From: Macrostomum lignano
Taxonomy: Eukaryota
Direction: 5' to 3'
Assembly: GCA_002269645.1 (NCBI GenBank)
Contig: NIVC01002129.1
Coordinates: 124,001-188,000 of the forward strand
Length of the DNA stretch: 64,000 bases
Part shown: positions 13,825 through 61,778 of the stretch, in pieces
How the letters are laid out: each line of letters begins with the position of its first letter
Position numbering within the stretch: position 1 is the first letter of the stretch
Translations under genes and position numbers: made by a program
Notes under the pieces: generated by a model
The model's input: only the letters and a program-made list of their open reading frames with translations
Told to the model about the DNA's origin: nothing
Databases searched by the model: none

Positions 13825-14944
13825 CACCCGTATATACTCTTTTGGCCGTATATATCACGTCAAAAAGGGCCAGTTTTGGCCGGAATATCATGATATATGA
13901 TACGGTAGCACGGTATCATAATGCAAAAAGCTTATATCTTTTCGCGCAATTTCAAATGACTTATGCCTGCAGTTTCATTTATTGCTTGTAAGATATTTAA
14001 TTTCATTGTAAAATCTAACGGCGGTGGTACTTCACCAGCTCCTACTGGCTAGCTACTTTTCTCCATGTACACAGTGTATTACGTTTACGTTTTCTCCCTT
14101 TTAGCATGATGATGTACATTACTAGCTGTAGCTATTCATAATCATAACTCAGCTAGCTAGAAGTGTTGTCAATCATCAATTAAGTATATGGGACAATATC
14201 TGACTCTAAGCATATTATATATATATATTAGCTATTTTGAAATGCTATCTGAGTATATAATATAATATAATACTGTTATATATAAAAGGTATATAACTTA
14301 GATCTAGCCTCCAATCCAATCTGAATCAGATAAAGAAACTAGCCTAAAGATCATCTAGGCTGGTTTTTTGTATAGATAAAGTGGAAATGGAATTATTCTA
14401 TTTTAATAGACATTAAGGCTAAGGCCTACATTAAAATTGATTTTCAATCAATTAATTTTCAGATAAATACCTAGAATTAGGTACTAACTATACTCTATAG
14501 TATATTTGTTATTGTATTTTAAATTCTTTTTTTATATCTGTTACAGACTTGTTTCCTCCTTCTTCTGCTGACCTCTAGATGTCACCAATTGTCACAGACG
14601 TACTCGTTCTAACTGCAATTTCACCTTAAAGCCACTGAATCTTTACAGACTTTCTGGCTCTTATCACTAAACTGTCTATTTCTAGTAGTATCGGCTGCCC
14701 TAAACTATGACCTTTCTCTAATTTCACACGATTTCTTGGAAACCTTGTGATAGCGTGTAGTGCCCGAGCGGTAAGACACTGTCTAATCCCCTAGTTTTAG
14801 TCCGAAAGTCTAGCGTTTTCCGAGGATCAAGGGTGTCCAGCAGTAGCTAAACTATTCCTAATGCCTAATCCTTAATGTCTATTATTAGCCCGCACGGCTT
14901 TCTTAGGATCTATACGATCTCGATCTCCCTACTCAGGTTTCTAT

Positions 14945-15242
14945 GCTTGGTCTCCACGACCTCAAGTTTCCCTATTCAGATCCCTAATTCTTGGTCTCCA
15001 CGACCTCAAGTTTCCCTATTCAGATCCCTAATTCTTGGTCTCCACGACCTCAAGTTTCCCTATTCAGATCCCTAATTCTTGGTCTCCACGACCTCAAGTT
15101 TTCCTATTCAGATCCCTACTTCTTGGTCTCCACGACCTCAAGTTTCTCTATTCAGATCCCTACTTCTTGGTCTCCACGACCTCAAGTTTCCCTATTCAGA
15201 TCCCTACTTCTTGGTCTCCACGACCTCAAGTTTCCCTATTCA
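14945..15242 (+). repeat. 44-bp tandem repeat, ~7 copies
   Basis: Unit ttcttggtctccacgacctcaagtttccctattcagatcccta(a/c), head-to-tail with no spacers. Confidence 0.9.
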
Positions 15243-17611
15243 ATAAATAAAATAGCGAAAACAAGTCTTAGCGGAAGTTTAAGGTTGAACACTCCAATTG
15301 CTAAGAGTTATTGAGTTTTTAGTTGAGAAACGAGGGTGAGCGCGAGTTGTATATTTGGCGGTCCAAGCTGTCTCTTTATATAATCGTTGACAAAGGGGGG
15401 GGGTGAACATAAGATATTTAAACAAAAATAAAAAGGAATTTTTAACAAAGTATCGTTTTAACAAACCTGTAATTTAAACAAAAGGGGAAGAAATTTGCTG
15501 ATTGGCCAGGATAAAAAGTCGCGATTAGCTACTGCTATAAGTAATATAGATGATTTATAACAAGCTGCCTCAACTGGCTTCCCTAATTTAAATTTTTCGA
15601 ATAATTGTTTGAGTGAAAAAATTTAACATAATATTAACATAATATTAGAAGTAGAATATGGGCAAAAGAACATGTTAGGAATAAATACGGTGAACAATAC
15701 AGACATTAATATGAAGTACACGCTAAGTAATTAATGTACATGAGCATGTGGACAAATAGGTAATGACCAGGGAAGCAATATATCACAAATATATACCGGT
15801 TCAATATCACAAATAGTGATTATGAACCGGTGCGTAAAAATACATATTAGCACAAGCAATAGAGCAACATACAAATGAGCAATGGATATTTGGCGTGAAC
15901 AAATGAGTAAATGTATGATTTAGCGTGAGTAAATGTACATGGCTTGGCATGATTAAGCATGAGCGAATGAATAAATGTACATATTAATATGATTAAATGT
16001 TACTAGGACTTAGCCAGAAAGCAAAATTGTCTTACTTAATCAATTCGTTAAGTCGTTAAGTCGTTAAGTCGTTAACCTAGATAAAGTTATGATCTCAGAC
16101 CTAAGTAATCTATACTCATTGTCATTTCGTATCAGCAACGCACCTTCACTACGGCCTCGAAGCCACTGAAGCTTATCTTGCCGTTATTTCCAGTGCGGTT
16201 GAAGTCAAACTGGACATGGAGTCTTTCCCTTCCAGCATGCAGAGCTCTCGTATCTGTGGGAAGTAGAAGTATGTGTGGTCAACGATGATCCTATTTAGAG
16301 CATTAAACTTATCAAGAAGTTTTTGCAAAAAAAAACTGCAGGGCATCAAGCGAAATCAACTCACCACTCATTGCTTCTGGAAATTACTGACGCCAGCATC
16401 CTGGCCTGCACGTTCAGCGCTCCTGTGGCCTGTGGGATGAATTTATGAATGCACGCAATGAATTTGATTGACTGTTGCTTAACTAAATTGTACAATATAC
16501 GTTAATTTCAGCACTTTATTATACTTAAAGCGATTTTCTTAGCACGCACAATGGTCGAAAGTGGGCGAAGCTATAACATATCAGATAAATTACTCGTAAT
16601 ATTAATCTATATAAGATATATTTGCCACCTTAAAAATTGTACTAAAAGTGGTGCTGACCGACTAGAGCAGGATTTAGAAACTTACTGATGAGTTCTTGCT
16701 GAGCTCCTGACTCCTGCAGATTAACAGTGGCATCGTATACTGCTGACAAAAGGTTCGGTTTGAATGCAATCTCTGTGCTTTATGCTGCTGTAGACTCAGC
16801 ATTTCTGCTGTTTGAATACCTCAGGGAACAGTTCGTTCGTTGAGAAGATCCTGTGAAGACACAATCAGCATCACAATTAATGTCGCCATCCATCAGTCTG
16901 ATAGTCAGCCGATATTTGCTGAAATTTCAAATATAGTTTCGATAAATTTTAGCATGTCTGAAACATAGTTTGCACAAAGACAAAGCCGATTACATGAAAC
17001 ACTTACTTCATCTGGGCGATATGAGTTCCTTCACTCTGCTTCACTCTGTCGTTTCTTTCAGCAGACCTGCGCACGCCAGCTCTCTGCAGGCATAAAGCTT
17101 AGCCGGCTTCAAGTCCTTCTTTGTATTCCCTACTTGTATGACCACCGCCTTATACGGTCTGGCCTCGCCATCGACCACACGGTAGTTGACGCTTTAAACT
17201 ACGGGGTTCATGTCTAAGCTAGCTAATTCTAGAGATTACAACAAGCTTGCAAAACTCGCTAAAAGGAATTGGAAGCACAACTCGGCAGCAATGTGGGTTC
17301 GTGATGCAAAAATATATTTCAAAGACCCTTTTAGGTAAAATTATTTGGGATCGGGGAGCGCAATAGAATATGCTGCGCACCGGTTGGCTGTGAGGAAGCC
17401 TTCCGTGCTTTGTGCTCTCACACACAGAACTCCACTCGGGTTATCCCCTCCCCCTCCAGCAGCTGTTCCCCCTGTTCCTCTGTTCCCCTCCCCTCGAAAT
17501 CGCCAGTTGCATGTCAGTCATTCAATTCATTTGATTGGATGAAGGGGAGCCCCTCGTGGAAAAAGCTTGCGGGCGCCCATATTCAAAGCTTTTCTTCCAG
17601 GCTCTGACTTC

Positions 17612-17637
17612 GAGAGAGAGAGAGAGAGAGAGAGAGA
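17612..17637 (+). repeat. (GA)n microsatellite
   Basis: Directly visible gagagaga run. Confidence 0.95.
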
Positions 17638-19444
17638 ATCTCCCCAGATTGGTTTATATTTCTACAGTTTATATGGAATCCTCAATGCTCATACTCAATT
17701 TCTCACCCTCCGACCAACATTAAAGGGCAAAGTTTGAAAGTTTTACTTAATTACTTATACGACTACGAGTAACAGTCAGCAAGTAATAGTGAAAACGAAA
17801 AAAATTAGATTAGTAGAGCACAAAACCGCACACAGAGCAAGTAAACCATTTTCATGGAGAATAAATTTGAGCTTATCGATCGTTCAGACTTTAAATGCTA
17901 AAGAATCTTAGACTCCCATGAAGCTAGCATTTGCGTAGGGGGGACTGCTTTTGCCTTCTTGCCTTGCCTTGCCTTTTGCCTGTTTTGTTTTCATTCTCTC
18001 TTTGTGTGATTCTGATTAAACTTTGTTTTGGCCACCCCTTCTATTTAACTGAGAAAAACCTTGGATAGATGAGCCCACCCACTGCCCGCACAGCTCCAGG
18101 CGTGAATTTTTCCGGCCATAAATCTTCTATACAACTAAATCTTGAATAAAAACTGAACTGGACTGCGCACCCAGGGCTTGGAATCTGTCAAAATGACAAT
18201 GGAAAGTCTCTCCGCCTGCAGCTATACTATAGATACTTTTTGGTCTGGGATAAATATTGTTTGCGATAGCTGTGCCCGGCCGCCACCTGGCTACCATTTC
18301 TATTCATCCAACTCTGATCCATTCAAAAAATTTTCCTTTGTTTACTTAAATTCTGCCATTCTGACGCACACACACAGCATTCGAATTCGCGCTGATATGA
18401 GGGGGCGCAGCCCACGCCGCCCACCACAGAGACTATGGGATGGGGCGCCAGAAAATCCGTCACGTATGCTCATGGATAGTAATTCTGAAAGCTAGGTTCT
18501 GGTCCTAGGGTTACTTTTTTGGTCTGTGCTTAAACGAGCAGCCTTATTTAATAATTACTCTAGGATAGCTTGTTGGACGGCGAGGTAAAGCGGTTATAAG
18601 ACAAGGTTAATTGTGCCAGAAATATTTACTGGCTTTAATTAACACACTTCTAGCAGAATATATAGCAGAATAGTGTAATGCAGTTGCATTGAATTTCCTG
18701 CAAGATTGTACTTTGCATGCAGCAGTCAGCATCGATAAAGATCAGAACAGACCAATAGAGAACTGTACCGGCCTATTCGTTTATTACTGCGCTTGCTGCG
18801 CAAAAATGTGGCGGTTGTAACTGTATGAGCTTTAGAATTTCAAAACAGTTAGTATTTACTTGCAAATTTTCGGTTTTACCCCATGACTTTAGAAAATTCT
18901 TTGCTGACTACTTAGGTATATAGAATACTAGAGAATGACGAATATCTAAGCAAAAATTAGTTGACAGAATGTTCGGCCATTTTTCGACCATGTTTCGACC
19001 AACTATGTTCCCTCTCTGAAAATTCGATGTTCTCCCTAGATTCGACAGAGAATCGACGTCGAATTTTACACCGGGAGGTTAGATAGTATATAATATTAAA
19101 TGTTTATAATAATATACTAGCTATTATACATGTTTCATTAAATAATAGTATAGCTAGAAATATTTAAATATTTAAATAACAATATTTAACTAGTCTTGGT
19201 TAAGTACAACTAGTTATATGGTTAGTGTAAATTTATACTATTAACAATAAAATATTTTATTTAATTATTGTTTTTAAAACCTTCCTAATTACTTGCATCC
19301 TTGTATTAGGCCTATTTCTTTGCCCTTCATATTATCCTATCTCTTTGTTGTTCTATCATGTTATTTATTTGCTCTAACTTTGCTTTCTCATTTCCTTGCT
19401 ATCCTACTTTCTCCTATTGCCTTACCGTCATTGCCACTATCTAT

Positions 19445-20130
19445 TTATGCTGTCCTACCCTCTATACAGCTCCACCCTTCCTGCTGTCCTACCCTCCATA
19501 CAGCTCCACCCTCCCTGCTGTCCTACCCTCCATACAGCTCTACCCTCCCTGCTGTCCTACCCTCCATACAGCTCCACCCTCCCTGCTGTCCTACCCTCCA
19601 TACAGCTCCACCCTCCCTGCTGTCCTACCCTCCATACAGCTCCACCCTCCCTGCTGTCCTACCCTCCATACAGCTCCACCCTCCCTGCTGTCCTACCCTC
19701 CATACAGCTCCACCCTCCCTGCTGTCCTACCCTCCATTCAGCTCCACCCTCCCTGCTGCAACCTTTCCTACTGTCAAACCCTCCCTGCTGTCCTACCCTC
19801 CATACAGCTCCACCCTCCCTGCTGTCCTACCCTCCATTCAGCTCCACCCTTCCTGCTGTCCTACCCTCCATTCAGCTCCACCTTCCCTGCTGTCCTACCC
19901 TCCATACAGCTCCACCCTCCCTGCTGTCCTACCCTCCATACAGCTCCACCCTCCCTGCTGTCCTACCCTCCATACAGCTCCACCCTCCCTGCTGTCCTAC
20001 CCTCCATTCAGCTCCACCCTCCCTGCTGCAACCTTCCCTACTGTCAAACCCTCCCTGCTGTCCTACCCTCCATACAGCTCCACCCTCCCTGCTGCAACCT
20101 TTCCTACTGTCAAACCCTCCCTGCTGCCCT
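19445..20130 (+). repeat. 34-bp minisatellite, left-arm copy
   Basis: Unit ctccctgctgtcctaccctccatacagctccacc, with an occasional variant gcaacctttcctactgtcaaacc. The same peptide string appears in all three frames, as expected for a period not divisible by 3. Confidence 0.95.
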
Positions 20131-21309
20131 ACCCTCTTTACTGTCCCACCCTCCTTGCTGTCCCACCTTTTTCCTGCCCCACCACACTCTTTCTCCTCTA
20201 CCACCTATATTTTTTCCTACCCTCCTTTTTCGCTATGCTGGAGTTTTTCTTCTTTCATGGTAAAAATTGTTGCTGTTTTAATATTTAAAAAAATCTGGTT
20301 TCAGAATGTCTTGGAAGGAGCATTGTCGCCAAAACTGCACTCCTGGTGTTAGTATTACGCGTGAGTGATACTTAGTGATCAAGGAATAGTGGAAGCATTT
20401 TTTCTACTAGAAGTATTTTTAAATCAGTCGTTTTCTTGCCGTTTTTAAAGTGTTGTTTGCCAGGCAGTGTACCCCTGAAATTTTTCTTCTCTTTTAGTAG
20501 CCATCCTATAGATGCTTCAATGGATCTCTATATGTAACTATAAATATTGCTATTTTGCACCGTGTCAAAATTCAAAGCAATCCTTTTCCTGCCTTTCAGA
20601 CCAGATTGACAGTTTGCGCGCATCTTACACAAACTTAGGAGATGCGGAGCGCATTTTTTTGCAAAATGCTGCTGCTCAACGAAAAAGTTGTAGCAAAGAT
20701 TTCACGGAAAGGAAGCTTCGAAAGGCTGCCAAGAAGCTTGTAAGAATGATAAAATGATTACAATTTTATTAAATAAGGAATGTTTCTTTGTTTTATTCAG
20801 ATGTTAAAGTATGGCTTCAGAAGTTAATTACTCTCCTTAAGCAATTTAGTTCTACGAGAGTATATGGAATTTCAGATTGATTCTGCTGACACAGCTGGTA
20901 TGCATGCCGTCGTGCTGCTTCACCCAAAAAGCGGCGGAGAAACCAGCGTCTTCGAGTCGGAGGACGTTATGGGGTTCTGCGAAAAGCGAAACATTGCTTC
21001 GGTAAGATATCCACCGCATATTCGTGCGGATTTTCGGAGCGAGTGTGTAATTTTTTTATGAATTTAAGAAAGAGGGTTTTACAGTGTGGTTTAGGATAAG
21101 CCATTCACGATATGTTGCTGAATGTGGCCACAACGTTTAACCTAACGAATTTTTTGGGGCCTTCAATCTGCGGTGGCAAATTCTGGGAGTGGCCCTACTA
21201 CCGCTGCTGGCCTTCGTATCGCGGTTAGCGAGCTTTTGCAAAGAAAATTTTGTAAGCATTTTTCTTATATGTGTTTGTGTTTTGCTGCTTTGCAATTCAG
21301 TTTGATGTA

Positions 21310-22850
21310 CCGTGGCGCACAACGAATTAGGACAACCGAACACAAATTAGAACTTTTTATTTTATAGCCTACACAGAATGCGGGATCTAATCAGTTATAG
21401 ATAACTATGGTATCGATCAATTAAATTAATGATGTATTAGGTACTTGCTCGCAATTGAGTGTCTTTAATTGAAGCCCCTTGTCTCACTTTAGAATTTGAT
21501 AAGTCACAGATTAATAAGACCACTTATTTTTTGGCTTAAAATGTGCTATAAAAATTTCTCAAACTCTCCTTGAATGGAGAAAGACAAAGCCCTATCGCCT
21601 GAGCCGTGTTGTTTGTGAAAGTCGACAATGTGCGTCCAGCAAGCACCCAGGCGCCTCAGCAGCACTGGCAGCACAGGCTGTGCCCCAAGACCTGGAAGGG
21701 CACCAAAAACTGACCTCCGACTGAATCAACGAATTGTTCGAACGTCCGAATCCAACCGTCGGCTCCCGCTATGGAGATCAACCGTGAACTTCTGGTGTCC
21801 AGCTGCACCCCATGACTGTCCACCACCATCTATCTGGTAGCTGCTGGACTGAATGGCCGCATTGCTAGGAAAAAACATTGATTTCCGACAAAAAGCAGAA
21901 GCGGCGCTTAAACTTTGCGTGGCAGTTGGACGCCCTAGGACTGGACCAAGGTCATCTTAAGTGACGAGAGCAAATTTTCCCTCACTGGTTCTGATGGCCG
22001 CCGGCATGTGCGCGTCCGAGCGAGCTGATGCGGAATTCTATCCCAGGTGCACCCTTGGCACCGTAAAGCATGGAGCTGGAAGTTTCATGGTGTGCGCTGC
22101 ATTCTCCAGAGATGTACCTGGGCCATTGGCCAATAACTTGCATTGAGGGCATTATAGACAGTCAGAAGTACCGTGATACTCTCTCAGCAGGACAACGATC
22201 TGAAGCACCTCTCTAAGGTTGTGAAGGCATGGCTTGCTGAGAATAACATCCGCACCATGGACTGACCATGAAGCGCAGTAACCAGACCTCAATCCGATTG
22301 AGAGCCTGCGAAACTGGATCGAGCGGGACATCTAAAGGCAGCAGCTAGGTTCCCTCCCATCATCAGCTCCACCGTATCATTGATACGGTGATCAATCGTA
22401 AGCTGCCATCTTTCCAGAAATGTGCCAGAAGCTGGTGGACACCATGCGTAGGCAGTGCAATGCTGTGATTAAGTCAAAAGGACATACTCGTACTAGAGTT
22501 AGTTAGATATCAGTGATATTTGCTTTGCTTATTTACCTACTAATCAATGTCAAACTTAAAACCATACTTCCTATTCAAATATCACATTCTTCTAATATAT
22601 AAAAATGTAAATTTTGCTTGCTTGTTTGCTTGTTCTGAACTAAAGACTAATAAAAAGGGAATCTATTTTACTATAAAATTACTGTAACTATTATATAACT
22701 ATATGACTATAATTACTATAAAAATAACTTTAAGTAATATTCTTACAATATTTACTTTAGATTTAGTGTTTGAAATTTTGCTTAAAGACCAGAATGGCAA
22801 AAATACAATAATTTTACAGCATTGTGTTCTTAATTCATTGTGCGCCACTG
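21310..22850 (+). mobile_element. Tc1-like element (1541 bp), degenerate
   Basis: TA|CCGTGGCGCACAACGAATTAGGACA at the left and TA|CAGTGGCGCACAATGAATTAAGAACA at the right (reverse complement); TA duplication at 21308-21309 and 22851-22852. Confidence 0.9.
21540..22500 (+). pseudogene. Tc1 (DD34E-type) transposase remnant
   Basis: Fragments RPGRAPKTDLRLNQRIVR, KRRLNFA, DWTKVILSDESKF, TVKHGAGSFMVCAAFS, QQDNDLKH and PDLNPIE, with several frameshifts and stops. Confidence 0.8.
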
Positions 22851-23229
22851 TATATAGTGGTGCATACTGAAATACTGAGTTGTTCAAAGATGTTAGTTCG
22901 TCATAACACATCATGAATGTATAAGAAGCTATCAATATGCCGGCCAGCACTGCTTCTTGAGTCATACTCGCGTTTTTACTTTTCCTTTCAGCGAAGGCTA
23001 TTAAAAACCGGCAGCTCCAATACTCCAATTACACACGCTTTGGTCGATGGATTAATTGGCCAACCGGTGTTCGGCAAGATTGTCACCCGCAGCGACTGTG
23101 CAAGAGGGATTTGATCTCTATCTGGTTAAAAAAAGAATCTCTTTTCTTTGAAAGATCAGCCGACCTACCATCAACCACTGTTGACCAGTCAAGAAGTGCG
23201 GTGTCGGCTGGCATCGCTGTCGGAAATTA

Positions 23230-23628
23230 TGCATCATCGACTGGTGCTGGTGCGGTGTCGGCCGGCATCGTCAGAAAGTCTGCATCATCGACTGGTGCTG
23301 GTGCGGTGTCGGCCGGCATCGTGAGAAAGTCTGCATCATCGACTGGTGCTGGTGCGGTGTCGGCCGGCATCGTGAGAAAGTCTGCATCATCGACTGGTGC
23401 TGGTGCGGTGTCGGCCGGCATCGTCAGAAAGTCTGCATCATCGACTGGTGCTGGTGCGGTGTCGGCCGGCATCGTCAGAAAGTCTGCATCATCGACTGGT
23501 GCTGGTGCGGTGTCGGCCGGCATCGTCAGAAAGTCTGCATCATCGACTGGTGCTGGTGCGGTGTCGGCCGGCATCGTCAGAAAGTCTGCATCATCAACTG
23601 GTGCTGGTGCGGTGTCGGCCGGCATCAA
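23230..23628 (+). repeat. 51-bp in-frame tandem repeat (~8 copies; SASSTGAGAVSAGIVRK)
   Basis: Unit gtcggccggcatcgtcagaaagtctgcatcatcgactggtgctggtgcggt; lies in an exon-like block after a pyrimidine-rich acceptor near 23156. Confidence 0.9.
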
Positions 23629-24337
23629 TGTCGGCCAGAAGGTTGCTGTTTCTTATACTTCTGTATGTCTTCATTGAAGCAGCCTTGAACAGTGTTTAAA
23701 ACCTATAAATAGGCAAAATCTGCTGATCACTGAAGCTGATAATAGAGAAAAAAGATATGTGATTCATGTGAAGCTGGCACTAGGGCTTTCGAAATTGTGA
23801 TCAGTGTCTCAAATTTCTGTTGTTTTCTACGACTATTTAGGTGCAGAGATTGACATCCGGCAGAAACAGGCCCGGTTCCCTTCGAACATCTCTCCTTTCT
23901 TCTCTCTCCTTTCTCTCATGTTTCCCCTATCTTCTGCCCAATCTATCTCCCCTTTTTCATCTATTCCCCATTTCGTCACCTCTATTAACACGGCCCTCTA
24001 GCGTTTCTTGTACTCTCTCTGTTGCCCTCGAGCCGTATAAGTTTGCCGACCCCTGATATAGGTCGATTCTATTAATACGTCAGTTTGTTAAAGAGAGGAA
24101 TGGGCCCAGTTGCATTTCTAGTTATTTTATGCGTTTTGTAGCTGGTAGCGGGTTAATTCTGCAATACGAGCTACACGTGTTTTCCATCTACCGGTATTGG
24201 TTAAAAAATGAAGAATCTTAACAATCTGAAGATTTATGCTCGTAATTACTATAAAGTCGCCATTTTTATTTTTTTAGTTTTTAGTGGTATAGTTGCTATT
24301 TCGCTTATTTTGATAAGCAAGGGTACATTTATATGCA

Positions 24338-26830: not shown

Positions 26831-27131
26831 CTATTCAGTAGTTAATAATGCTTTGCAAGCTTAATATTTAACAACAAAACTTATCTCCACTTTTGGCACT
26901 TTTACTGATCGCAAGTGGATCCACACGCAGCCATGGAGTGGATTGAGCTGGACTAGTCGAGCAGCCCCGTGGACTGGACTTGAAAACGTAGTACACTGTT
27001 TTTTTCGCTGATTAGAAGAGGTGTGGAAATTCACCGAAATTTAAGCATCGATATCTCAGCAACTACTCAATATTTTGACAAGCGGTAAAGTACAGCTGGC
27101 TCAGAATTTCTTTACCTTTTATCGAGTAAAA

Positions 27132-29810
27132 CGGGGTGTGAACTTAAGCTCCAGAATGGAGCTCGAATGAGGCCAGCAGACCAAACTGACTGTATCGATA
27201 ACTTGTTGGCCTACAAACTACAGACTACAAACGCTGACACATCCCACCTGAGTCTATTCTACTGGGTCCTGGGAAGAAATGGGATAAATGGGGATTTCAT
27301 GTGAACTTAAGGCTCATTTCTCATTAAGTTTATGATGAGGACGCACTTTTTCCCAAATCCCGCGCTAGCACATGGGCTTAAAACATACTTGCTTACTAAC
27401 GGTAGGCTATGGGCATTTTTTATCCGTTTTCTGCAAATTAACTTAAAATCTATACTAGATATAATGTCTGGCCATACTAGTAGTCATAATAACATAGGCA
27501 TTGCTTTTTGGGTCATAAATCATCGCTTTCGAAGTTGGTCTGACAGCCACCTGCGCCTCACTCAGTGTTGAGACGGGCGCCTGATGGTCTGAGAGGATGC
27601 GGGCGGTAGCTTTTTTCTCATCATTTTGACAGGCCATCAAGATTTATGAGGTCAGAGCCTATTGTTCGTGTTCACTCAAGCGTGTGACAGCTTTGACAGC
27701 TATGCGTTTTACCCCTAAAAGTACTTTGGGATTAGCGATTAGCAATTTCTCTTCATTATCTTCACTTTCTATTTAATAAGAGCTTTCTAATGTATATTTT
27801 TTCATTAATTTCTGTCAATCCTACGCGAAAAGTCATAAATCATTTTGTTGCGATTTTGATTGATTTATGGCCGCACTGTCATCTTTTTACGACCCTGTGG
27901 GAACTGATAGGATCTCTTGGTCACGTGATTCTGGGTAGCAACAAGCTTAGCCAATCAGAAAATTCGGCGCTCATTTTAACAAAACGGCTCAAGCCAATCA
28001 GAATCGACGTGTTCCATTATAACAAACTGCGGTCCAGTTGGCCGCTATTTAAACCGGTGTTTTTGGCCCGCTCGGACCCCAGACGCTTGCTCTCGGCCAG
28101 GAACTCTTTCCCCGGCCTGACCGTCGTTTCTTGATCCCCGGATTGCGACTTCCCTCCTCATCATCAAGGACGAGTCTTTCAGTCACCAGCAGCGAACATC
28201 AAAGTTAAGATCATCACCTGCTAGCTATCTGCGAAGACTGTGACAACATCATCCCGAGTCTACAGCTGCGAAGCATCGAGCCGATTCGGTCACTGTGGAT
28301 TACCTGGTCTCCGGCTGTTGAGTTTCTGATTGGTTGGGTGAGAGGCTACCTAGACTTGCTTGATTGGGTGATTCCTTATCTGTCCCCTATTTTAGTAGCT
28401 GGATTAGGCGCACACTTTTGCTCATTTTGTTCAGTAGTGCTGTTACTGAGGCAGAAATCATTCAATAATACTGCTAGTAGTCTGAAACTCCTATTCGATC
28501 TGAAGTCTGAAGTGATCTAAGGAGAAGGTTAAATCTAACAGTTATTTTTATCGGTTTTATTTCTTTGCTCGCCGATGGCTCAGATGAGTAGCTAATCTAG
28601 TAGGCGCCGGTCACAGTGGACCAATGGCAAGGCAGTTCTCAGTCGATCCATCAATCAAACCAGTGAGCAAAACTGCCAGAAGTGCAGAATCGGCGCCAGA
28701 GATGTACTTTGTGCACTCTAGGTTAGCCAAGCGGCTCGGGTAATGAATCATGCGGTCTCTGAAGCTCGAGTTAGTCTATCATCAGCGCTATGAGAGGCTA
28801 GTTGGCGTGTTGAAGGCCAACATATCTTCGTATTTAGCAATTTAATAGTACATGTAGCTACCCCATAGACTCGCCACTGCAAGAATCCCCTGCACAAGTC
28901 CTCTCTGTACCTGCATGGCCAATGCGATCAAGTCCCAGCAGTGTCCCTTATCATCGGCTATGACTTCGAGATTGACAGCTAAAAGACACTAGTTGGCAGG
29001 TAAGTGCAAAGCCCCTTCTAGTCGGAAGCCCGATTTCGAGAGTCCCAGTGTGGTGAGCCAGGACACGTACGGGCTGGTGGCAGCGAGTTAGCTTAGTCTG
29101 CGGATTAGCTAATTTCTACCTTCAAAATTCTCCCTGCTTGTCTCTCACTGTCCCTCTCCTAGCTATAGGACCTAGACTGCTCGCCACACGATCAAGCTAC
29201 CATCGGGCTGACCATCTGACAGGAGTGGGGGGCCAGGACTCTAATTGATTTATTTCTGAGGCCTGAGGCCCGAAGGCTTCCTCACCAGGGGCCTGAAAGG
29301 TCGAAACCCATCATTTATCTCAAGGATGCGCAGTGTTATGCAGCCCTTAAGCCATGTTAAGGATAGTGATTATTTTGGAAACTAAGAAGCAAGTCAATGG
29401 CCCTCACATTTCAGTTTTTGGTTTAGGCTGTGACTTTTTTATGGTTTAATTGTCCAAGACCATAAGGTGCCATCATCGCCACTCAGGCTGGCGAATGGGG
29501 AAGCGGTTGCCCCCCCCCCCACCTTAGGAGGCGACCCGCAAAAAATTGTTCGGGAGGACCAATCGAATTTTTGCGAAAATCCTAGCCCGCCTTACGCCAC
29601 CCTCCGTCTGCTAATCCTAGCTAATGCATTCTGGAGCTTAAGTTCACATGAAATCCCATTTATCCCATTTCTTCCCCCAGGACCCAGTAGAATAGACTCA
29701 GGTGGGATGTGTCAGCGTTTGTAGTCATCTGGGCCGAGAGTTATCGATTCCAGTCGGTTTGTTCTGCTGGCCTAATTCGAGCTCTATTCTGGAGCTTAAG
29801 TTCACATCCC
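27132..29810. repeat. Pair of ~180-bp inverted repeats (27132-27313 and 29625-29810) 2.3 kb apart
   Basis: ggggtgtgaacttaagctccagaat...cgctgacacatcccacctgagtctattctactgggtcctggg..gaagaaatgggataaatgggatttcatgtgaacttaag occurs reverse-complemented at 29625-29810. Confidence 0.8.
27905..28060 (+). promoter_or_regulatory. Promoter-like cluster (E-box, two CCAAT boxes, TATA-like)
   Basis: tcacgtga (~27921), agccaatcag twice (~27949, ~27992), tatttaaa (~28047). No downstream ORF identified. Confidence 0.3.
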
Positions 29811-32674
29811 TTTTCATGCGCCAAATCAATCGTTTTGGGGTGCAGTATATACATGTATGGCTCGGAAAGAAAGAACTGGAGAAAGAACTTGAGTAGTGGA
29901 ACACTCGTATAAAGGAAACTCCAGTATTGGAACCTTGCAGACTCCAATACTAGCTCGTAGATTGATGGTCGATTTTAGCGTGCAGTTTGACTTGACTTAG
30001 CTTGACTTAGCTGCAGGGTGGTCCGTAGACACAGCGGGGAGGCGAGGGTCGCCCATTCCGCTAGTCCCTGAAGGCCCGCAGACAGGCAGAGGCGTGGGGC
30101 CGGTCAGGCTGGTCCGCCGGTCCGTCCTGCAGCGTGATCTTCCGTTGGGAAGAAACTGGCTCGTCTGATCTAGTCGCCCGAAGGAACTGGATGAGCCGTG
30201 AGATGCTGTCGGGCTGGCAGACCTCGTCGATGGATGGGTTCGGCCCGAGGTAGCGTAGCCGGTCTCTGTTAAAGAAAGGGCAGTGACAAACAAAGTGCTG
30301 AGCATCTTCATTGTCGCACTCGCAAAAAGGGTAGCGTGCAGTTTAGTGCGACACTGCTCAGCGGCTTGCGTAGTTTTGATTAGTTGCAAGTTGCAGGACA
30401 GCCGGTTTACTTGCAGAATCTTTACTGTCAGCAGGTTAAAATTGATAACGTCTAAATTTGACAAGTGCACCTAGGCCGGGGGGATACAAATTTTTGGCAT
30501 TTTGCAGAGTGGATTTCTCGCCTATGCGACCAACATTTTCTGATAGAAATTTCGACCCCCTGAGTCGATTGGCACCGGTCCCAGAGCGCCAGAAGGTCGT
30601 CCAGTAGAGTTATTTGCACTTTTCTGGTGCCAAAACCGAAACTTCAGCATTGGAGCATAAGAAAACTCCAGCATTGGAGCGAGACTGGAGCTGATATAAC
30701 TCCAGCATTGGAGCCAGCATTTTTTCCTTTGGTACTTACTGGCTCCATCGTCCCGATGCTCCTCATGCTGCTGACAACATGCGGATGGCGTGTGGCGAAG
30801 CTTGAAGTTATAGTCGTGAAGTTGAAGAGGCAACGCCTAGCTGCGTCCGCGTGCCCGGAACCCCTGCAGCTAAGTCAAGTAACCCTCTACCACTGTACAC
30901 AACTCTCAAATCTGCGCAATAAATACATGTGCATGTAGCTAGTGCATGTGCACTTGCCAAGCACAGAGAAGGCAAAACTTCTGCCCGATATTGTGCTTCT
31001 CAATTCAAATGCGCATTTAAGAAATTAATAACATGCAATCCGTGTTTTCCGTTCGTTATTTTCAGCAGTACAGCATTTTTGCCGATCCCCCTCATAATTT
31101 GTGCCCCTAATTACTCATGTTGGCTTCCCAAACTTGGACCGCCCCCTCCCAAAATGAAATTCTAGATCCGCCACTTATCATACATGATAAGACTGACTGA
31201 ATTTACTATTACTAATATACCTATACTGATTATAGATCATTTGTCTCAATCGGATGGAAACAACTTACATATGTAAATGTCCATGTATCAGGAAAGTCAT
31301 GGCTATTTAAAAAGTGGCAGGATGTCAGGCTACGGTAGCACGAGACTTTTCCACAGAGGCTTTTCCACCGAGATTTCCTCTCATTTTTAACCAACAGGTG
31401 CTGCAGGCTGCAGAGACAGAGGGTGAGGAGAAAGGGAGGTCAAGGGGGGCAGACAAACTATTGACTACTGTAAAGTAAAATCATATACTTTATACCTCTC
31501 GTCCTATGGCTCTACCTCCCACTATTCTTTGTGACCGTCGTGTGACCATATTTGTGTCATCAAAAGAGAATTCGATAAAACAGGAATGTTTCAGGACAGG
31601 ACAGAGTGAATTATCATAAAAAGCATAGGTAAAATCAGTGAAGTATGTTTTATTTTAGAGGCACATGTTTATAATATACAGTTAAGTATATACTCGTAAA
31701 ACTGTACGTTGAAAAAAGACAATGAAAAACGATTGTCAAAAAAACGCGCTGCATAGTTCTCTCAAAGTTTGCCTAGCAAAACTCGACAGGGAGGGGGGGG
31801 GCGGCAAAAAACTGGCATTATAGAGCGGGAGAGAGAGCGTCAGAATTTGTGATGAATTTATCCTACGCTGCTCTAGAGCGTTAGTTACGGGTTTCCGATA
31901 TACACGTAAGATATCTGTGTCCACAGTGGACCGAAAAACATGACAGTTTCATCAATCCAACAGGATATTGACAATACTAAATAATAGTATTACTACTGTA
32001 CTATTTAAAGGGAAGGAAAGTTGCCAAAAATTATCATAGAACTGTAACATTTCCCGAATTCACCCGTACTTAAAAGAAAAGGATTACTTTTAACCTCAGT
32101 TGCTATATTTTTCGATACATTTTAAATGCAAACTTACACAGGAAAGTACATATTGGATACCACACATAACGATATTTATTAAAAATAGCATTACGTACAG
32201 TACTGTAGTACTTGCAGCAGTAGTAAAAATTTAGCATTACCCGTACGAGTATTTTAAGGACATAACGAGACTGTTAAATCAAGAACGGTACAAAAGCATA
32301 ATTTCAAAGAATAAAGAGACCGTGCGTTAAAATGTTATATACAATCGTGCTTGATCCTACGTGAATTAGAGTTCCTACGCCTTGTACAACTCATACATAG
32401 CTAAAGTAGACGCAAAGAATCACTTCACGCAATAGCAGAGTGGATCGCGACAAAAAGTCCAAAGTAAGACAATCGGAAGACATTCTTAAGCACAGGTTTC
32501 GCATTGAAATCATTGTGAGTGTCCCGTATCCAAGATATGGCATATATGGTAACCACCTATCGAATTTTTTTATAGGCAACAACTTTTGTTTATAAAATTG
32601 AAAACTATTGAAAAAGCAATATATTCCTCGAAAACTAGATTGAAACACCTTGCTCAGTCGCTCTGGGTCCTAGA

Positions 32675-35600
32675 TCAGTCAGATTCATACTCGGATTCGC
32701 TCTCGGATTTGCTTTCGAATTCGCTCTCGAAATCGCTTTCCGGCGATGAAGATGGTGAACTCGATAGGTCGTTACCGGAACCACTGGACGCTGAAATAAA
32801 TCCAGGGTAGAAAGTTCATAAGTTTATTATTTATTCATTAAGTTTATTCTTAAGTCATAGATCATTTGCAAAAATTAAGTTTGTAAGTCTGAATTTCACA
32901 GTCTGAAAATGTGAACATGCTTTATGGGCTTTACCACGTGCTGTCTGCAGGCAGGAAATGCTGGTTGTAGTGGAATGAACTGCTTGACATTCTGAAGGGA
33001 AGGCTGCTAAGTGAGCTTCGAGTATCTGAAGAATGCCATTCTCTCTCATCGACAGTGCGGCAGCCAATGGACCATCTCGAGCTTCTACTTCCGTGCGCGC
33101 TTTGCGAGCCGCATCATTGAGAAATTGCAAAGTCCTCTCTGCTTCCGCAGCGACCAGACGCGACTCCTCCTGGATACGAAGGTACAGGTCTCGAAGCTTC
33201 ACAGCATGTACTTTTTGAGCTTGGTTTCTGATGCTCACAAGTTCCTCGAAGCCGAGTGATTCAGGCTTAATGAAGTGGCCTGGATTTAGTTGGTCAGTAG
33301 GATTCGCACTGTTAAAACTCGAGTAGATCGCTTTTGTTTTGGCAAGCAATTTGTTAAGAGAAACTCGAAGAAGCTTTTGCATGCGCTGTCCACGTTCTGT
33401 CCCCACATGCTCAATCAAATACCGGCGCTCGCAGGCAATTCCATAGAGCTTCTGAATGGCTTTAGATTTGGGCGAAGATGCTTTGGAATGAGCAGTTAGT
33501 ATAGCGAAAAGCTCCTGTCTCCAACCGGCTGCAGCGCAGAGAAAATCTTCCAGACTCACTAAAGAGGTCAGTTTGCAAGGTAAATCATTAATTCCTTAAA
33601 GGGTATCCAGACCCTCTATATTAACTACTCGCAGAGTAAACTCATTTAAATTTCTATTTTAAGTGCACCGTCAAAATCTTACTTAAAGAATTATTCTGGA
33701 GTCGAAAAGTCGAAAGCTCTTCTTGGAACTGCTGCATTGCTTTTCTCTCCACGGCTTTTCGGCCGATAAGCCAGGTAGCTAAAGTGAGATTTAAAATAAA
33801 GTGCATCAGTTAAGTTCTTATTCGTAGTTTTTTTTATCGCTTTTGTTGGGTTTCCACTATTTTGCGCAATTTCTACTGTATGTATAGCACTATGACTTAC
33901 TGATCTTTGTGATACACTGGAAGTTTATAGTATTCGCTAGATAGTTCAAAAATTCGCGACGGTTATCGTGGGCCATCTCTTACAACTGAGGGCCAAAACG
34001 CCGAAGCGTTGCCCAGACGAGCTCTACACTCTCACCATCTGTCAGGCCGACTGATTGAACAGAGCGTATACCATGTGAGAGTTGACAGCGTAGAACATGC
34101 CCATAGGAATGAAAAGCCGGAATGGCGAAAGATAGCCTTGAGTCGTTGAAGCGACCGGTTAGTTTACATCCGATGTCGTAGGATACGACGATTGGCACCA
34201 TTGGCGGAACATCCCGAAGCATTTGAGCAATCATTGTAGTGGAATAGTTTAGTCTAAAGATAAATTCAATTGCAAAAATCACGAAATGGTGCTGTAAGTT
34301 TTGAAATTTGGGAATATTTCCATATACTAAAAATGGTGTCGGTAGGTAGGTATGTGGGTAGGTATAGGTATGCTATCGATTTTAGATTGGTTCTAAAAAC
34401 AATTTACCGTTCACCAGTCGATGTCATATCGGCCAAATAAGTTATTGCAGAATGTCTGCAGGAACCAGAGAATGCACCAAAAACATCTAGCTTAGCGCTA
34501 TCTGAAGAAGTCGACAGACCTTGGCCTCTTCCACCTGCATTCCAGTTTGCACAGTGTCCTGTAGAGGGCGGACACTTCTCAGTGAGGTCGACGTCAAGAA
34601 AAAAGCCAGAATGAGCTGGTAGAGTGGCATTTCCAGCAGTTTTTCGATGGCGAAGACCAAAGCAGTCATCCATCAATAAAAAAACTGGCTCTTCACTAGC
34701 CGCATTCGTGTTGACCTGAATTTTGTGTAGAAGTCACGTTAATTTTTTATTACGCAGATTGCACAGGAAATAGAAAAGGAAGCATTTTGTAAAATACTCG
34801 TAAATTAAAAATAATGTTACCAAATAGCAAGCGGGGCATGATGCTTTCTCTTCCCACCGAAAGTTTTGAAGCACACGTCGAAATGATTTAAACGCGCCAG
34901 TCAAATTTAAGGCTCTAAAAATATCGAGCTTAAAAGTGGTACAGAAGTAAGAAATACACTGAAATACTCGTGTCGATAATAAGAAATTGTCAGTCAGGGG
35001 CAATGGTGCCTGAAAAACTTACTGATGGGGATTTGCGCATCCAAATTGACTCACGATAACGCTTAAAAGCCCAACAGAGAGATGATAAGGATGCAGTGCA
35101 GTTGCAATTAAGCGAGTCAAGTAGTAGTAGAAGGTCGACTGCAATAGCCGTCAGCATTTTAGAACATTCTGGTCTGGCTTGCAAAGGCCAAAATCCATGT
35201 ACCAGAAGTGCAGAATGGTACGTTGCACAGGAGCAAACTTCTAAATCTACTTGCATCTCACTTCCTAAATTGTGTTAAAAACATGGAAGCTTTTACCATC
35301 TAAATATACTAAATTAATATACTAAAAATGAAAGCAAAGATAGAGTTGTTTATAAGGCAAAATTTAATGTCCAAATAATTTTACCATCGTCTGTGATGAC
35401 AGTAACAGGAAATACGCCAGCTATTGTTGAATTGCAGCCACACATTCGAGCCAATCGCACATTCGGTTTGACAGCCTCAAAGAATTTGCCCTTGTATAAG
35501 GAGGTACATTTAAAAAGGTATAAAAATGTATGAACTTGAAATTTTAAGAATTATGCAAAATCATTCGTGAATGCCTTTACATTCCAATGGTGTACAATAT

Positions 35601-35947
35601 GAGGTGGCTTGTGTGCATGCTTTATTTCTAGACAGGCAAAACACACTGACAGCAGGTGGCACTTTGTACAGCGGAACATGCTGTCGGACGAGATACCCCA
35701 GACAACACATGGGTGCCGATTGAAGTAGGTAGCAAAATCCTTGAGAAGAGTACCAGACTCAAACAAGTCGCTCCAGGCAGCAGATTCGTCGTCGCAAAAC
35801 TGCTTGAAACGACTGGGTGGCTTTTTCGCGCGGCTACTTGGGGGCATCGTGCAATCGAATAGATTAGGATGGTCCGTGCCTTCAGGGATATCTTCCCAAT
35901 CTTCATCGTGGACATCCGTACGGTCATTATTATTATGGACTTCGTCA
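32675..35947 (-). pseudogene. Inner KDZ transposase: spliced CxC + KDZ gene with a nonsense codon
   Basis: Exons give ...FRCTKCHLLSVCFACLEIKHAHKPPHIVHHWN | GKFFEAVKPNVRLARMCGCNSTIAGVFPVTVITDD | SEMQVDLEVCSCATYHSALLVHGFWP... | LDIFRAL...SCPACYL | ...FLLMDDCFGLRHR...GSCRH...TGER | LNYS...VSYDIGCKL...IPAFHSYGHVLRCQ...GLTDGESVELVW... and then an acidic SESE tail ending TGA at 32675. D, CxH, GE, YDIxC, H..H..C and DGExxExxW are the recalled KDZ signatures. In-frame TAA at 33980-33982 (GPQL*EMAHDNRR versus GPQVKEMAQDNRR in the outer copy). Confidence 0.9.
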
Positions 35948-36004
35948 CTGAAAGATAATAATTTTTTCTCTAAAAATAGGAGCAAAACTGAAGTTCTAAA
36001 GAAG

Positions 36005-37075
36005 AGCAAACTGTATAGAGGGTAGGACAGCAGGGAGGGTGGAGCTGTATGGAGGGTAGGACAGCAGGAAGGGTGAAGCTGTATGGAGGGTAGGACAGCA
36101 GGGAGGGTGGAGCTGTATGGAGGGTAGGACAGCAGGAAGGGTGAAGCTGAATGGAGGGTAGGACAGCAGGAAGGGTGAAGCTGTATGGAGGGTAGGACAG
36201 CAGGGAGGGTGGAGCTGTATGGAGGGTAGGACAGCAGGGAGGGTGGAGCTGAATGGAGGGTAGGACAGCAGGGATCGGGAGGAGCTGTATGGAGGGTAGG
36301 ACAGCAGGGATCGGGAGGAGCTGTATGGAGGGTAGGACAGCAGGGAGGGTGAAGCTGAATGGAGGGTAGGACAGCAGGGAGTGTTTGACAGTAGGAAAGG
36401 TTGCAGCAGGAAGGGTGAAGCTGTATGGAGGGTAGGACAGCAGGGAGGGTGAAGCTGTATGGAGGGTAGGACAGCAGGGAGGGTGGAGCTGTATAGAGGG
36501 TAGGACAGCAGGGAGGGTGGAGCTGTATGGAGGGTAGGACAGCAGGGAGGGTGGAGCTGTATGGAGGGTAGGACAGCAGGGAGGGTGGAGCTGAATGGAG
36601 GGTAGGACAGCAGGAAGGGTGAAGCTGTATGGAGGGTAGGACAGCAGGGAGGGTGGAGCTGTATGGAGGGTAGGACAGCAGGAAGGGTGAAGCTGAATGG
36701 AGGGTAGGACAGCAGGAAGGGTGAAGCTGTATGGAGGGTAGGACAGCAGGGAGGGTGGAGCTGTATAGAGGGTAGGACAGCAGGGAGGGTGGAGCTGAAT
36801 GGAGGGTAGGACAGCAGGGATCGGGAGGAGCTGTATGGAGGGTAGGACAGCAGGGATCGGGAGGAGCTGTATGGAGGGTAGGACAGCAGGGATCGGGAGG
36901 AGCTGTATGGAGGGTAGGACAGCAGGAAGGGTGAAGCTGAATGGAGGGTAGGACAGCAGGGAGGGTTTGACAGTAGGAAAGGTTGCAGCAGGAAGGGTGA
37001 AGCTGTATGGAGGGTAGGACAGCAGGGAGTGGGGAACTGTATGGAGGGTAAGACAACATGGAGGGTAGGACAGTA
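36005..37075 (-). repeat. 34-bp minisatellite, right-arm copy (inverted relative to 19445-20130)
   Basis: ggtggagctgtatggagggtaggacagcagggag is the reverse complement of the left-arm unit, including the same gtttgacagtaggaaaggttgc variant. Confidence 0.95.
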
Positions 37076-37630
37076 GGGAGGGTATGGAGTAGGACAGGAG
37101 GGAGAGTAGGATAGCAGGGATTGACATAGATAGTAGAGCAACAAGGAGATAGGGTGGGATAGCAGGGAAGGTGGAACATTAGGATTCAGGAAAGGGGTGG
37201 GGCAATGAGGTGGAGCAGCAGGGTAGAAGATAAGAGGGGCAACAAGGAGGGCATTGCAGGGAGGGTAGGATAGCATGAAAGTGGAATATAAGGATAAAAG
37301 GGTAGGATAGCACTGAAAATAAAACACAATATAGCAATGACAGAACAAGCAAGATGGGATAACAAGGTAGGATAACAAGGTGGGTAGTACCAGCAAAATA
37401 GATAGTGGCAATGAGAGAGGGTAAAGCAATAGAAGAGAAAGTAAAATACCAAAGAAATGGGAAAACAAAGTTAAAGCAATAATGCAATAACTTGAATAAG
37501 GTAGGACAGCCAAAAAAGATTGGATAATATGAAAGGCAAGAAAATGGTCACAATACAATGATACAAATAAGTAGCAAAGAGGTTTAAAGAAACTAATATT
37601 TTATTGTCAATAATAGTTAGGCCTAGCTAT

Positions 37631-37805
37631 CATGGGTGGCGGGAGCTTGTGGCACAGGGGGCATGTGCCCCCCAGAAAATGAGTCCATATGGTAATTTTT
37701 AGTGCTTTTTCTTATTTCAGATTCTAATTAACTTATAAAGGTACCTGTGCCCCCTTTGTCCTGTGCCTGGTGCCCCCCCTCAAATATTAGGCTCCACCGC
37801 CTTTG
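37631..37805. mobile_element. hAT-type MITE (175 bp)
   Basis: 8-bp TSD CTAGCTAT at 37623-37630 and 37806-37813; imperfect ends CATGGGTGGCGGGAG / CTCCACCGCCTTTG. The 8-bp TSD is the basis for the hAT call. Confidence 0.78.
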
Positions 37806-37999
37806 CTAGCTATTAAAAGCGATACTAGCTATACTATTATTTTAATTAAACATGTATAATAGCTGGTATATAATAAACTTTTAATATACCACATAACCTA
37901 TAATAATAAACAACAATATAATAAAGACTTTATAAATATAATATTAAATATAGCATAGTATCAAATTCTAGGTATTTATTTGAAAACTAATTGATAGAA

Positions 38000-38605
38000 G
38001 GCAGTGCTTATTTAGCCGGCACCGGTCAAATAAGCGCGTCACTATTTAGCCGGCAGTCCTGCCCCATTGCCGGTCAAATAAGCGCGTCACTATTTATCTG
38101 GCAGGCCTGCCCAACTGCCGGTCAAATAAGCCCGTCACTATTTAGCCGGCAGTCCTGCCCCAGTCCTGCTGCCGGTCAAATAAGCCCGTCACTATTTAGC
38201 CGGCAGTCCTGCCCCACTGCCGGTCAAATTAATAAGCTATAACCCATTCATCCAAGCGATCCTTGCCCTCTCGTGTGCTACAGACAGTATACATGTACAG
38301 TATGGCCAGGGCCCACAACTAGGACGTATTAAACATTCGCCGACACTTATTCAGACACTTCTACAGACACTTTAGTTTCTGTCGTACGAATCGTAGGAAC
38401 AAGCATTAAATTTGTTTATTGCCGGCTAAATAGTGACGAGCTTATTTGACCGGCAGTGGGGCAGGACTGCCGGCTAAATAGTGATGGGCTTATTTGACCA
38501 GCAGTGGGGCAGGACTGCCGGCTAAATAGTGACGGGCTTATTTGACCGGTGCCGGCTAAATAGTAGCGAACTTATTCGACCGGTGCCGGCTAAATAAGCA
38601 CTGCC
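38000..38605. mobile_element. Mutator-type foldback MITE (606 bp)
   Basis: 9-bp TSD TTGATAGAA at 37991-37999 and 38606-38614; ends GGCAGTGCTTATTTAGCCGGC / GCCGGCTAAATAAGCACTGCC; arms built from ~45-bp subrepeats. Confidence 0.85.
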
Positions 38606-39312
38606 TTGATAGAAAATTAATTATTATAATGTAAATATAGGCCTGGCCTATTGTCTATTAAAAACTAATAATTCCATTTCCATATCAATTCATATATACA
38701 AAGAACTATATCTAAGTTACCTATAACGTAATAAAATATACTCATTTTTAAGAGACTAAGAGTATTATACTATATTATATATCCTTGTTCACTCACTTAG
38801 CATTTCAATAATACAATATAGTTAATTTAATATGCCTAGTTATAGACATAGTCCCATAGACCTAATTGATGATTAGACAACACTTCTAGCTAGCTAGTTA
38901 ATGAATATGATTAATGAATAGATAGCTAGTAATTTTAGGGGCCTAAAGATAAAGCCAGGACCAGGTTGTATAGGCTGTACATCACTATGCTAAAACTCAA
39001 GAGAGAAAAAATAAACTGTGTACATGGAGACGAGTAGCTAGGCTTAGAGCTGGTAAAGTAGCACAGTTAGATTCTACTTATGGGGTATAGAATCATTCTA
39101 CAATGAAATTAAATACCCTACAACTAACTGCAACTCTACTTAAGCGAGCTAGCTCAATATGAACCCGAGAGTCATTTGAAATTGCGCGAAAGGGATAGGC
39201 TTTTTGTATTATGATACCGTGCTACCGTATCATATAGCATGATATTTCGGCCAAAACTGGCCCCTTTTGACGTGATATATACGGCCAAAAGTGTATATAC
39301 GGCTGTCCCGAC

Positions 39313-44548: not shown

Positions 44549-44600
44549 GTGAAAAGTTTTTTATTAAAAGCTTTTATTCAAGGACAAATAAAGTACAAAA

Positions 44601-61762: not shown

Positions 61763-61778
61763 ACTATGCGCAGGAATT

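Follow-up and report, generated by a model that had tools for sequence, protein, structure and literature searches.

The ends of KDZ (Kyakuja-Dileera-Zisupton) DNA transposons are now defined for each of the three groups that give the superfamily its name. Zisupton and Dileera elements make a target-site duplication (TSD) of 8 bp, whereas Kyakuja elements make one of 7 bp, have CA..TG termini and carry no terminal inverted repeats (TIRs) (Kojima 2025, PMC12730594). For the Cryptococcus element KDZ1, TIRs of 236 bp and a TSD of 8 bp are described (bioRxiv 10.1101/2024.08.15.608186). We analyzed a 64,000-nucleotide stretch of the genome of the flatworm Macrostomum lignano (assembly GCA_002269645.1, contig NIVC01002129.1, positions 124,001 to 188,000; hereafter the window), which contains a 25.5-kb element at 13825-39305, here called the inner element. 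We hold with high confidence that the inner element is a class II cut-and-paste KDZ transposon, a member of a clade that diversified within M. lignano, and that it is nested in a sister element. It is an inactivated and putatively new family of a known superfamily; the literature consulted contained no report of KDZ elements in Macrostomum. A first-pass annotation, made from the letters of the window only, had described the ends of Kyakuja and Dileera as poorly defined, a view that the two papers above have overtaken. It had also proposed the element as a candidate for a new system, and the element came out as a further family of a known superfamily, in a copy that carries a nonsense codon in its transposase gene.

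The inner element resembles each of the described groups in part. The elements KDZ1-KDZ3 of Cryptococcus neoformans, which belong to the Dileera clade and are 9-11 kb long, share with it a large size, the KDZ domain, TIRs that run to hundreds of bp, a target duplication and perhaps a CxC-type cluster at the N-terminus. Their cut-and-paste mobility has been shown by experiment, and the same mechanism would be expected for the flatworm element. They are fungal, however, with an 8-bp TSD, a clear CxC1 domain and no minisatellite arms described, whereas the flatworm element is an animal one with a duplication of most likely 7 bp, a weak CxC match and subterminal arrays. Kyakuja elements share the 7-bp duplication and the 5'-CA..TG-3' termini of the symmetric reading that we favor below, and their consensus start, CACATA..., is similar. 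Unlike the flatworm elements, which have TIRs of 134 bp (inner element) and 305 bp (a family called P0008 here), Kyakuja elements are fungal, are reported without TIRs and often carry TET/JBP genes. In an unlabeled neighbor-joining tree of the KDZ core the inner element groups with animal or flatworm proteins, away from the fungal CxC2 group. Zisupton sensu stricto (Bohne et al. 2012; fish, fungi and nematodes; PMC9297572) is like the inner element in its KDZ domain, its multi-exon gene in animals, its TIRs and its large size. It is unlike it in that the canonical protein has 1000-1400 amino acids (aa) with CxC4 and SWIM domains, whereas the inner protein has ~750 aa and neither domain; the 8-bp TSD of Zisupton would be a further difference under the 7-bp reading.

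The sequences that flank the inner element reveal how it came to its present position. The plus-strand exons on both sides of it form a second KDZ gene, whose protein is ~51-55% identical to the inner one. Two UniProt proteins of M. lignano, A0A1I8GH28 and A0A1I8HMS9, match the plus strand at 13197-13379 and 39736-41951 with 95-100% identity, which bears out the earlier supposition that the DNA comes from an animal. The first recognizable coding exon of this outer gene lies at 13197-13535 (100% identical to residues 83-143 of A0A1I8HMS9), and the gene begins at or before 13197. Exon 2 starts at 13799, is interrupted by the inner element after 13824 and resumes at 39313 to end at 39394, and the remaining exons, at 39736-42247, are 95-100% identical to the two UniProt proteins. 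Identical copies of the heptamer TCCCGAC abut the inner element at 13818-13824 and 39306-39312; by our own calculation, the chance of a 7-bp match exactly abutting both ends is roughly 1e-4.

When position 13824 is joined to 39313, so that the element goes together with one repeat copy, the product reads GNFYEVVPTEVCLLRQCGCTGISSIFPVTVITEEGM in one frame; an uninterrupted exon 2 would have the sequence ...GAAGTTGTCCCGACAGAGGTG.... The restored exon aligns residue for residue with exon 2 of the inner gene (GKFFEAVKPNVRLARMCGCNSTIAGVFPVTVITDDG...) and with P0001, is equal in length to the inner exon 2, and shows the same E-x-V-x-x-x-V spacing as the inner copy and P0001. If both copies of the repeat are retained, the frame is broken. 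Because removal of the element and one repeat copy rebuilds a conserved exon in frame, these data prove a single insertion event with target duplication, which struck a sister KDZ element in exon 2 of its transposase gene. The first-pass annotation had recognized the insertion, and its coordinates of 13825-39305 are exact, but it overlooked that the surrounding sequence is a KDZ element too. The locus thus provides a self-documenting animal KDZ insertion, in which the empty site can be recovered from a paralogous exon. For annotation, this means that A0A1I8HMS9 and A0A1I8GH28 are partial models, pieces of one transposase gene, and that repeat masking should treat the region as nested KDZ elements. 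The A0A1I8HMS9 model splices 13379 to 39736, over the whole 25.5-kb insertion, and has a LINE-tail-like N-terminus (LINE, long interspersed nuclear element) that is absent here.

The left terminus of the outer element lies at 10406-10513 on the plus strand. It begins with the same 13 bases as the inner element, CACCCGTATATAC, and its first 105 bp resemble the inner TIR at ~62-65% (nhmmer E = 2.7e-4); for the 13 bases, 0.72 chance matches are expected when up to 2 mismatches are allowed. A C-rich 13/25-bp minisatellite at 11964-12783 (plus strand) matches the array of the inner element described below in its placement and direction with respect to the terminus and the gene.

The inner element encodes a KDZ transposase on the minus strand at 32855-35847. 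The modeled gene comprises 749 codons in eight exons (35847-35581, 35490-35385, 35264-35023, 34958-34821, 34715-34408, 34253-33901, 33778-33683 and 33594-32855); all introns are GT-AG and the frame is maintained throughout, with one TAA. The gene may also have a terminal exon, short and acidic, around 32788-32678. The translation matches the KDZ profile PF18758 with 119.3 bits against a cut-off of 26.6 (E = 2.5e-34) over profile positions 3-217 of 217, and the domain was also hit by exons taken singly. The assignment to the KDZ superfamily and the compact, intron-rich gene, both proposed from the raw sequence, were thus borne out. Residues D267, D380 and E428 are invariant in an alignment of the inner protein with three other M. 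lignano proteins and one from sea cucumber, and by their position we infer that they would be the catalytic triad. The TAA is codon 445 (33980-33982, minus strand), within an exon of the KDZ domain, where all five aligned homologues have lysine, and therefore no full-length transposase can come from the inner copy. On exon 3 the CxC1 profile scored 19.2 bits, under its cut-off of 26.9. CxC1 was matched by 3 of the 7 clade members and CxC2 by 2 of the 7, with E values of 4e-4 to 1e-3, and neither SWIM nor CxC4 was present in the inner protein or in the seven clade members (630-830 aa).

The ends of the inner element were placed by adding the terminal CAC/CAG to an inverted match of 134 bp, in which 13828-13961 is 93.3% identical to 39302-39170. 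The left TIR (13825-13961, plus strand) contains CCGTATATA twice within its first 35 bp, and the right TIR (39170-39305, minus strand) begins CAGCCGTATATAC... on the minus strand. Inverted ends had been noted on both sides, and so had an inverted similarity that continues inward; both are real. From collinear inverted blocks, the left, gene-distal arm extends over 13825-20225 (plus strand; native sequence 13825-14537 and 19093-20225, ~1.85 kb) and the right, gene-proximal arm over 36005-39305 (minus strand; native sequence 36005-37999 and 38612-39305, ~2.7 kb). The blocks have identities of 76-89% and pair 14136-14272 with 38910-38773 (80% identity), 14382-14460 with 38682-38612, 14443-14537 with 37999-37903, 19093-19157 with 37887-37825 and 19273-19460 with 37588-37382.

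They lead into a 34-bp minisatellite with the unit TGCTGTCCTACCCTCCATACAGCTCCACCCTCCC, present in ~21 copies at 19448-20167 (plus strand), where it is C-rich reading inward, and as an inverted partner of ~31 copies at 36011-37088 (minus strand). The right array stops 164 bp 5' of the first in-frame ATG of the transposase gene. Beyond the first 134 bp the arms are 66-89% identical when the arrays are excluded, and the array stretches of the two arms are ~95% identical, above the unique arm sequence. Long open reading frames (ORFs) that cross the arrays were rejected as coding, the base composition being such that all three frames are open. A match of 37637-37801 to 5653-5828 in two related loci (L001 and L002, see below) was likewise rejected as arm homology; the right arm has probably taken up a small repeat there.

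Long inverted tandem-repeat arms or reiterated subterminal motifs are known from Foldback, from Galileo of the P superfamily and from CACTA/En-Spm elements. These belong to other transposase superfamilies, whereas here the arms are mostly unique sequence with one array each, and a close relative is free of arrays. Foldback elements consist essentially of long, highly similar tandem-repeat arms with little or no coding capacity; the inner element holds a 3-kb transposase gene and a 12-kb interior. The ~2-kb foldback-like arms of the first-pass annotation are better described as diverged subterminal similarity, not near-identical, and the complete relative lacks arrays altogether.

Of the earlier claim of a 7-bp TSD, the duplication itself stands, as the exon is restored in frame; its exact length is less firm, since the same junction can be read as 8-9 bp and the relative gives 6 bp. 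With symmetric CA...TG ends the flanking repeat measures 7 bp, and it grows to 9 bp, TGTCCCGAC, if the last two bases of the element are counted; the 8- or 9-bp reading is possible because the left flank likewise ends in TG. In the complete P0008-family element at locus L003 the repeat is CTCATT, 6 bp by symmetric ends and up to 9 bp, CTCATTCAC, when the first three bases of the element are counted. Whatever fixed cleavage position is taken, the two elements differ by one base, which reflects either a 1-bp indel at one junction or a variable stagger. All seven M. lignano KDZ ends that we tabulated start with 5'-CA, and six of the seven fungal KDZ consensus sequences in Table S1 of Kojima begin with CA (PMC12730594); for this reason we consider 7 bp the probable length.

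The same transposon might instead have made a duplication of 8 bp (GTCCCGAC), the length made by canonical Zisupton and Dileera, or of 9 bp, with the right terminus short of its last one or two symmetric bases, and the duplication would then not set the element apart from ordinary members of the Zisupton superfamily. This agrees with the 9-bp direct repeats found in both the window and L003, and with the 8-bp duplications made by Zisupton and Dileera (PMC12730594) and likewise by Cryptococcus KDZ1 and KDZx1 (bioRxiv 10.1101/2024.08.15.608186). However, one end of each element would lose the 5'-CA that is present at its other end, in a superfamily where the six fungal consensus sequences have it, and where it would stay at six of the seven tabulated M. 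lignano ends. Nor is the longer reading more consistent than 7 bp, as the window and L003 remain one base apart. We therefore regard a duplication of 8 or 9 bp as rather unlikely.

We also considered whether the ends and the gene belong together. The ends could be those of a Mutator-like element (MULE), with long TIRs and a 9-bp duplication, in which the KDZ gene would be a passenger; the 9-bp reading of the direct repeat, the length of the TIRs and the UniProt label of A0A1I8GH28 ('MULE domain-containing') are in keeping with such an origin. However, the element gave no match to a MULE transposase domain, and the terminus CACCCGT occurs in three elements that each encode a KDZ gene: at the left end in the inner and the outer element, and at both ends in the P0008 element of L003. 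The same terminal motif thus accompanies three different KDZ genes, with the same relative layout in the outer and P0008 elements and an equivalent orientation in the inner one, and the divergence of the ends tracks that of the proteins, which makes a MULE origin very improbable.

We give just as little credence to the idea that there is no single mobile unit, the locus being an inverted segmental duplication or foldback, or two short opposed elements that bracket a KDZ gene. Long arms with tandem arrays, moderately similar past 134 bp, might suggest this, as might the foldback-like array pairs near other KDZ genes (L001 and L002). Yet one duplication flanks all 25.5 kb, and removal of exactly that unit restores the exon in frame. 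Had there been two insertions, independent of each other, each would be flanked by a duplication of its own, and the exon would not be restored.

Several observations weigh against the interpretation of the inner element as a KDZ transposon with arrayed arms and a 7-bp duplication, nested in a sister element. The CxC zinc cluster was matched only below the Pfam threshold, and the start codon of the transposase is uncertain, in that the real start may perhaps lie in an upstream exon. The symmetric 6 bp of L003 disagrees with 7 bp, and its P0008 element has no arrays, so that arrays are not required in the clade. The right end of the outer element was sought in the window with an nhmmer TIR model, low-stringency self-BLAST, a scan for CA[CG]CCGT and local alignment, none of which gave anything above background. 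A second copy of the exact inner family was likewise not found, no genome-wide DNA search having been made, and the ends, the copy number and the duplication length rest on a single insertion (n=1).

An exhaustive HMMER search with a flatworm profile gave 2130 relatives of the transposase at E < 1e-3 and 29 at E < 1e-30. The nearest were all from M. lignano, followed by proteins of amphioxus, scallop, sea star, sea cucumber and cave fish with 25-30% identity, and a further homologue search yielded two distant fungal proteins only. In the neighbor-joining tree, which was drawn from KDZ proteins that carry no subgroup label, the flatworm proteins form a clade of their own beside other animal KDZ proteins and apart from the fungal ones, which make up a CxC1 group (Puccinia, Tilletia, Mucor) and another with CxC2 (Suillus, Mycena).

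We took 13 genomic loci (L001-L013) from GCA_002269645.1 for comparison. In L003 the P0008-family element is complete, 9.9 kb long, with 305-bp TIRs that start CACCCGTGTCAC. Across the 13 loci, the 34-bp unit and the terminal motifs of the inner element were sought, and the motifs were met only at the own ends of the L003 element; the TIR was not found in JGI metagenome contigs. L001 and L002 (NIVC01000126.1 and NIVC01000227.1) hold copies of a family called P0007 (protein PAA87534) that are 99.6-99.9% identical, lie on different contigs and share the left boundary CATCAGTGTCAC... beside unrelated flanks, which points to recent transposition. Both loci have pairs of inverted 28-bp arrays upstream of the gene, pairs of inverted 40-bp arrays downstream of it, and, within intron 1, 60-78 tandem copies of a 19-bp unit; their array regions may be misassembled. 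Inverted repeats of 800 bp around the P0007 gene in L002 were considered as KDZ arms and rejected, being copies of a separate miniature inverted-repeat transposable element (MITE) with 32-bp TIRs.

The family Mlig001681 (L006-L009) has at least 5 copies of more than 20 kb, whose left end, CAGTTTATGGCC..., starts 5'-CAG beside differing flanks. Mlig004599 (L005 and L010-L013) was found at at least 5 loci, with gene names up to g29; it also exceeds 20 kb, and its left end, CAGAGCATATTCC..., starts 5'-CAG beside differing flanks. The P0162 family has at least 5 copies. The right ends of P0007, P0162 and Mlig004599 lie beyond the 10-kb flanks that were taken, and duplications were readable only for the window element and L003. 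M. lignano thus has at least seven KDZ families, some of them of more than 20 kb and, as the P0007 copies suggest, recently active; the window element itself is a dead, low-copy member. A 748-aa intronless KDZ ORF of the flatworm clade, P0009, was present on a 2935-bp Logan contig. It has the look of a spliced transcript that was assembled, which hints that some members of the clade may be expressed.

Arrays of 0.8-6.5 kb between the left terminus and the gene occur in six of the seven families (inner, outer, P0007, P0011, P0162 and Mlig004599), with unit sequences that are unrelated. From this recurrent position, and from the homogeneity of the 34-bp arrays between the two arms, we infer that the arrays may be subterminal reiterated protein-binding or regulatory sites, either bound by the transposase or promoter-proximal, which would be kept alike on both arms; one relative is array-free.

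How the inner element would have moved can be proposed from known DDE transposases and from the mobile Cryptococcus KDZ elements. A transposase of ~750 aa, with N-terminal cysteine-rich zinc modules (B-box-like and weakly CxC1/CxC2-like) and an RNase-H-fold DDE core, would bind the TIRs (5'-CA(C/G)CCGTATATAC...), pair the ends and excise the element. The 3' ends would then be joined to target phosphates at a stagger that is most likely 7 bp, and gap repair would leave the TCCCGAC duplication. The inner copy would now be mobile only if a related transposase acts in trans.

Two multicopy KDZ families of M. lignano have a SET-domain gene ~2 kb 3' of the transposase (L005 14863-16865, L007 13238-14236, L010 9357-11393, L011 14821-16856, L012 14829-16865 and L013 14857-16860). 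In Mlig004599, four of the five loci keep the order KDZ, SET and a small gene of 84-98 aa, within the part that the copies have in common; in L013 no small gene was called. The SET protein of this family has 486-497 aa in four loci and 409 aa in L013. The SET ORF is nearest to SETD8/KMT5A, an H4K20 methyltransferase (E = 1e-13). By analogy, it may be an animal parallel to the capture of TET/JBP genes by fungal KDZ elements. The window contains no SET-like sequence, and we found no paper on a SET gene carried by KDZ elements of M. lignano. We propose, tentatively and with somewhat less than even confidence, a distinct animal branch of KDZ elements in Macrostomum, with TIRs, CA..TG ends and a 6-7-bp duplication, habitual kilobase minisatellite arrays that lie between the terminus and the transposase promoter and serve as binding or regulatory sites and, in some families, a captured SETD8-like H4K20 methyltransferase gene; the window element would be a decayed member of it. 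If the array architecture and the SET cargo hold up, these families would join the few transposons known to carry chromatin modifiers.

The 25.5-kb size of the inner element is largely secondary, the result of at least four later insertions and of minisatellite growth. It had been called a giant element, which is an overstatement, as its length is largely due to nested insertions and array expansion and the complete relative measures 9.9 kb. The left arm alone has a later insertion of ~4.55 kb at 14538-19092, where the right arm is contiguous (37903 to 37887); it includes a 44-bp array at 14946-15242. The right arm is interrupted at 38000-38611 by a palindromic MITE of 612 bp with 48-bp repeats, a 21-bp TIR (GGCAGTGCTTATTTAGCCGGC) and a 9-bp duplication (TTCTATCAA), and the left arm has kept the site of this insertion uninterrupted. 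A duplication of 9 bp is of Mutator-like length.

The interior, from the left arm to the 3' end of the gene (20226-32854), contains a 51-bp array (23196-23626), Tc1-like remnants (21961-22146 and 22173-22265, the latter with a QQDNDLKH motif), a 2.7-kb element at 27118-29825 with ~190-bp TIRs (88% identical) and no recognizable ORF, and a LINE-tail-like ORF (30064-30342). The 2.7-kb element has relatives of 89-90% identity in L004 (16931-21422). The Tc1 and LINE calls were made by motif or by likeness to the N-terminus of P0003, not by Pfam; ORFs of at least 58 aa in the rest of the element, the 4.55-kb insertion included, had no Pfam match. No second conserved gene common to the interior and the rest of the window was detected by tblastx.

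Outside the nested KDZ elements, the window contains other repeats and gene fragments. A complex repeat at 2408-3684 and 43667-47055, with a partial copy at 10138-10358, also occurs in L003 (4336-6086) and L005 (1-561). It combines a 23-bp minisatellite (AGAAGCGTCATGTAAAAAATCAT) with a 30-bp array and with TTAGGG repeats in an interstitial position (46739-46834), and it is found 0.05-1.4 kb from the left end of three different KDZ elements; it could be a preferred target or merely an abundant repeat. At the left edge of the window, a 187-aa ORF at 2-562 (minus strand) scored 25.2 bits against Monjiviricetes_fusion (cut-off 27) and may be an endogenous viral or env-like fragment. ORFs of 494 and 190 aa at 50236-52268 (minus strand) had no Pfam match, and Pfam gave no support for reading the ORF at 50236-51717 as an EnSpm-type transposase, which its HIDGLPLFKS...FW look had brought to mind. 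An inverted repeat of 190 bp, 99% identical (5834-6025 and 7175-6982), surrounds a 151-bp tandem array (6023-6809), and a separate palindrome of 317 bp lies at 42561-42877; these are probably further repeats of the foldback or MITE type. Near the right edge, at 58696-63998 on the minus strand, are pol pieces of Gypsy-type long terminal repeat retrotransposons (RVT_1, RNase H and integrase), and the two sets of RNase H and integrase suggest two adjacent or nested Gypsy copies.

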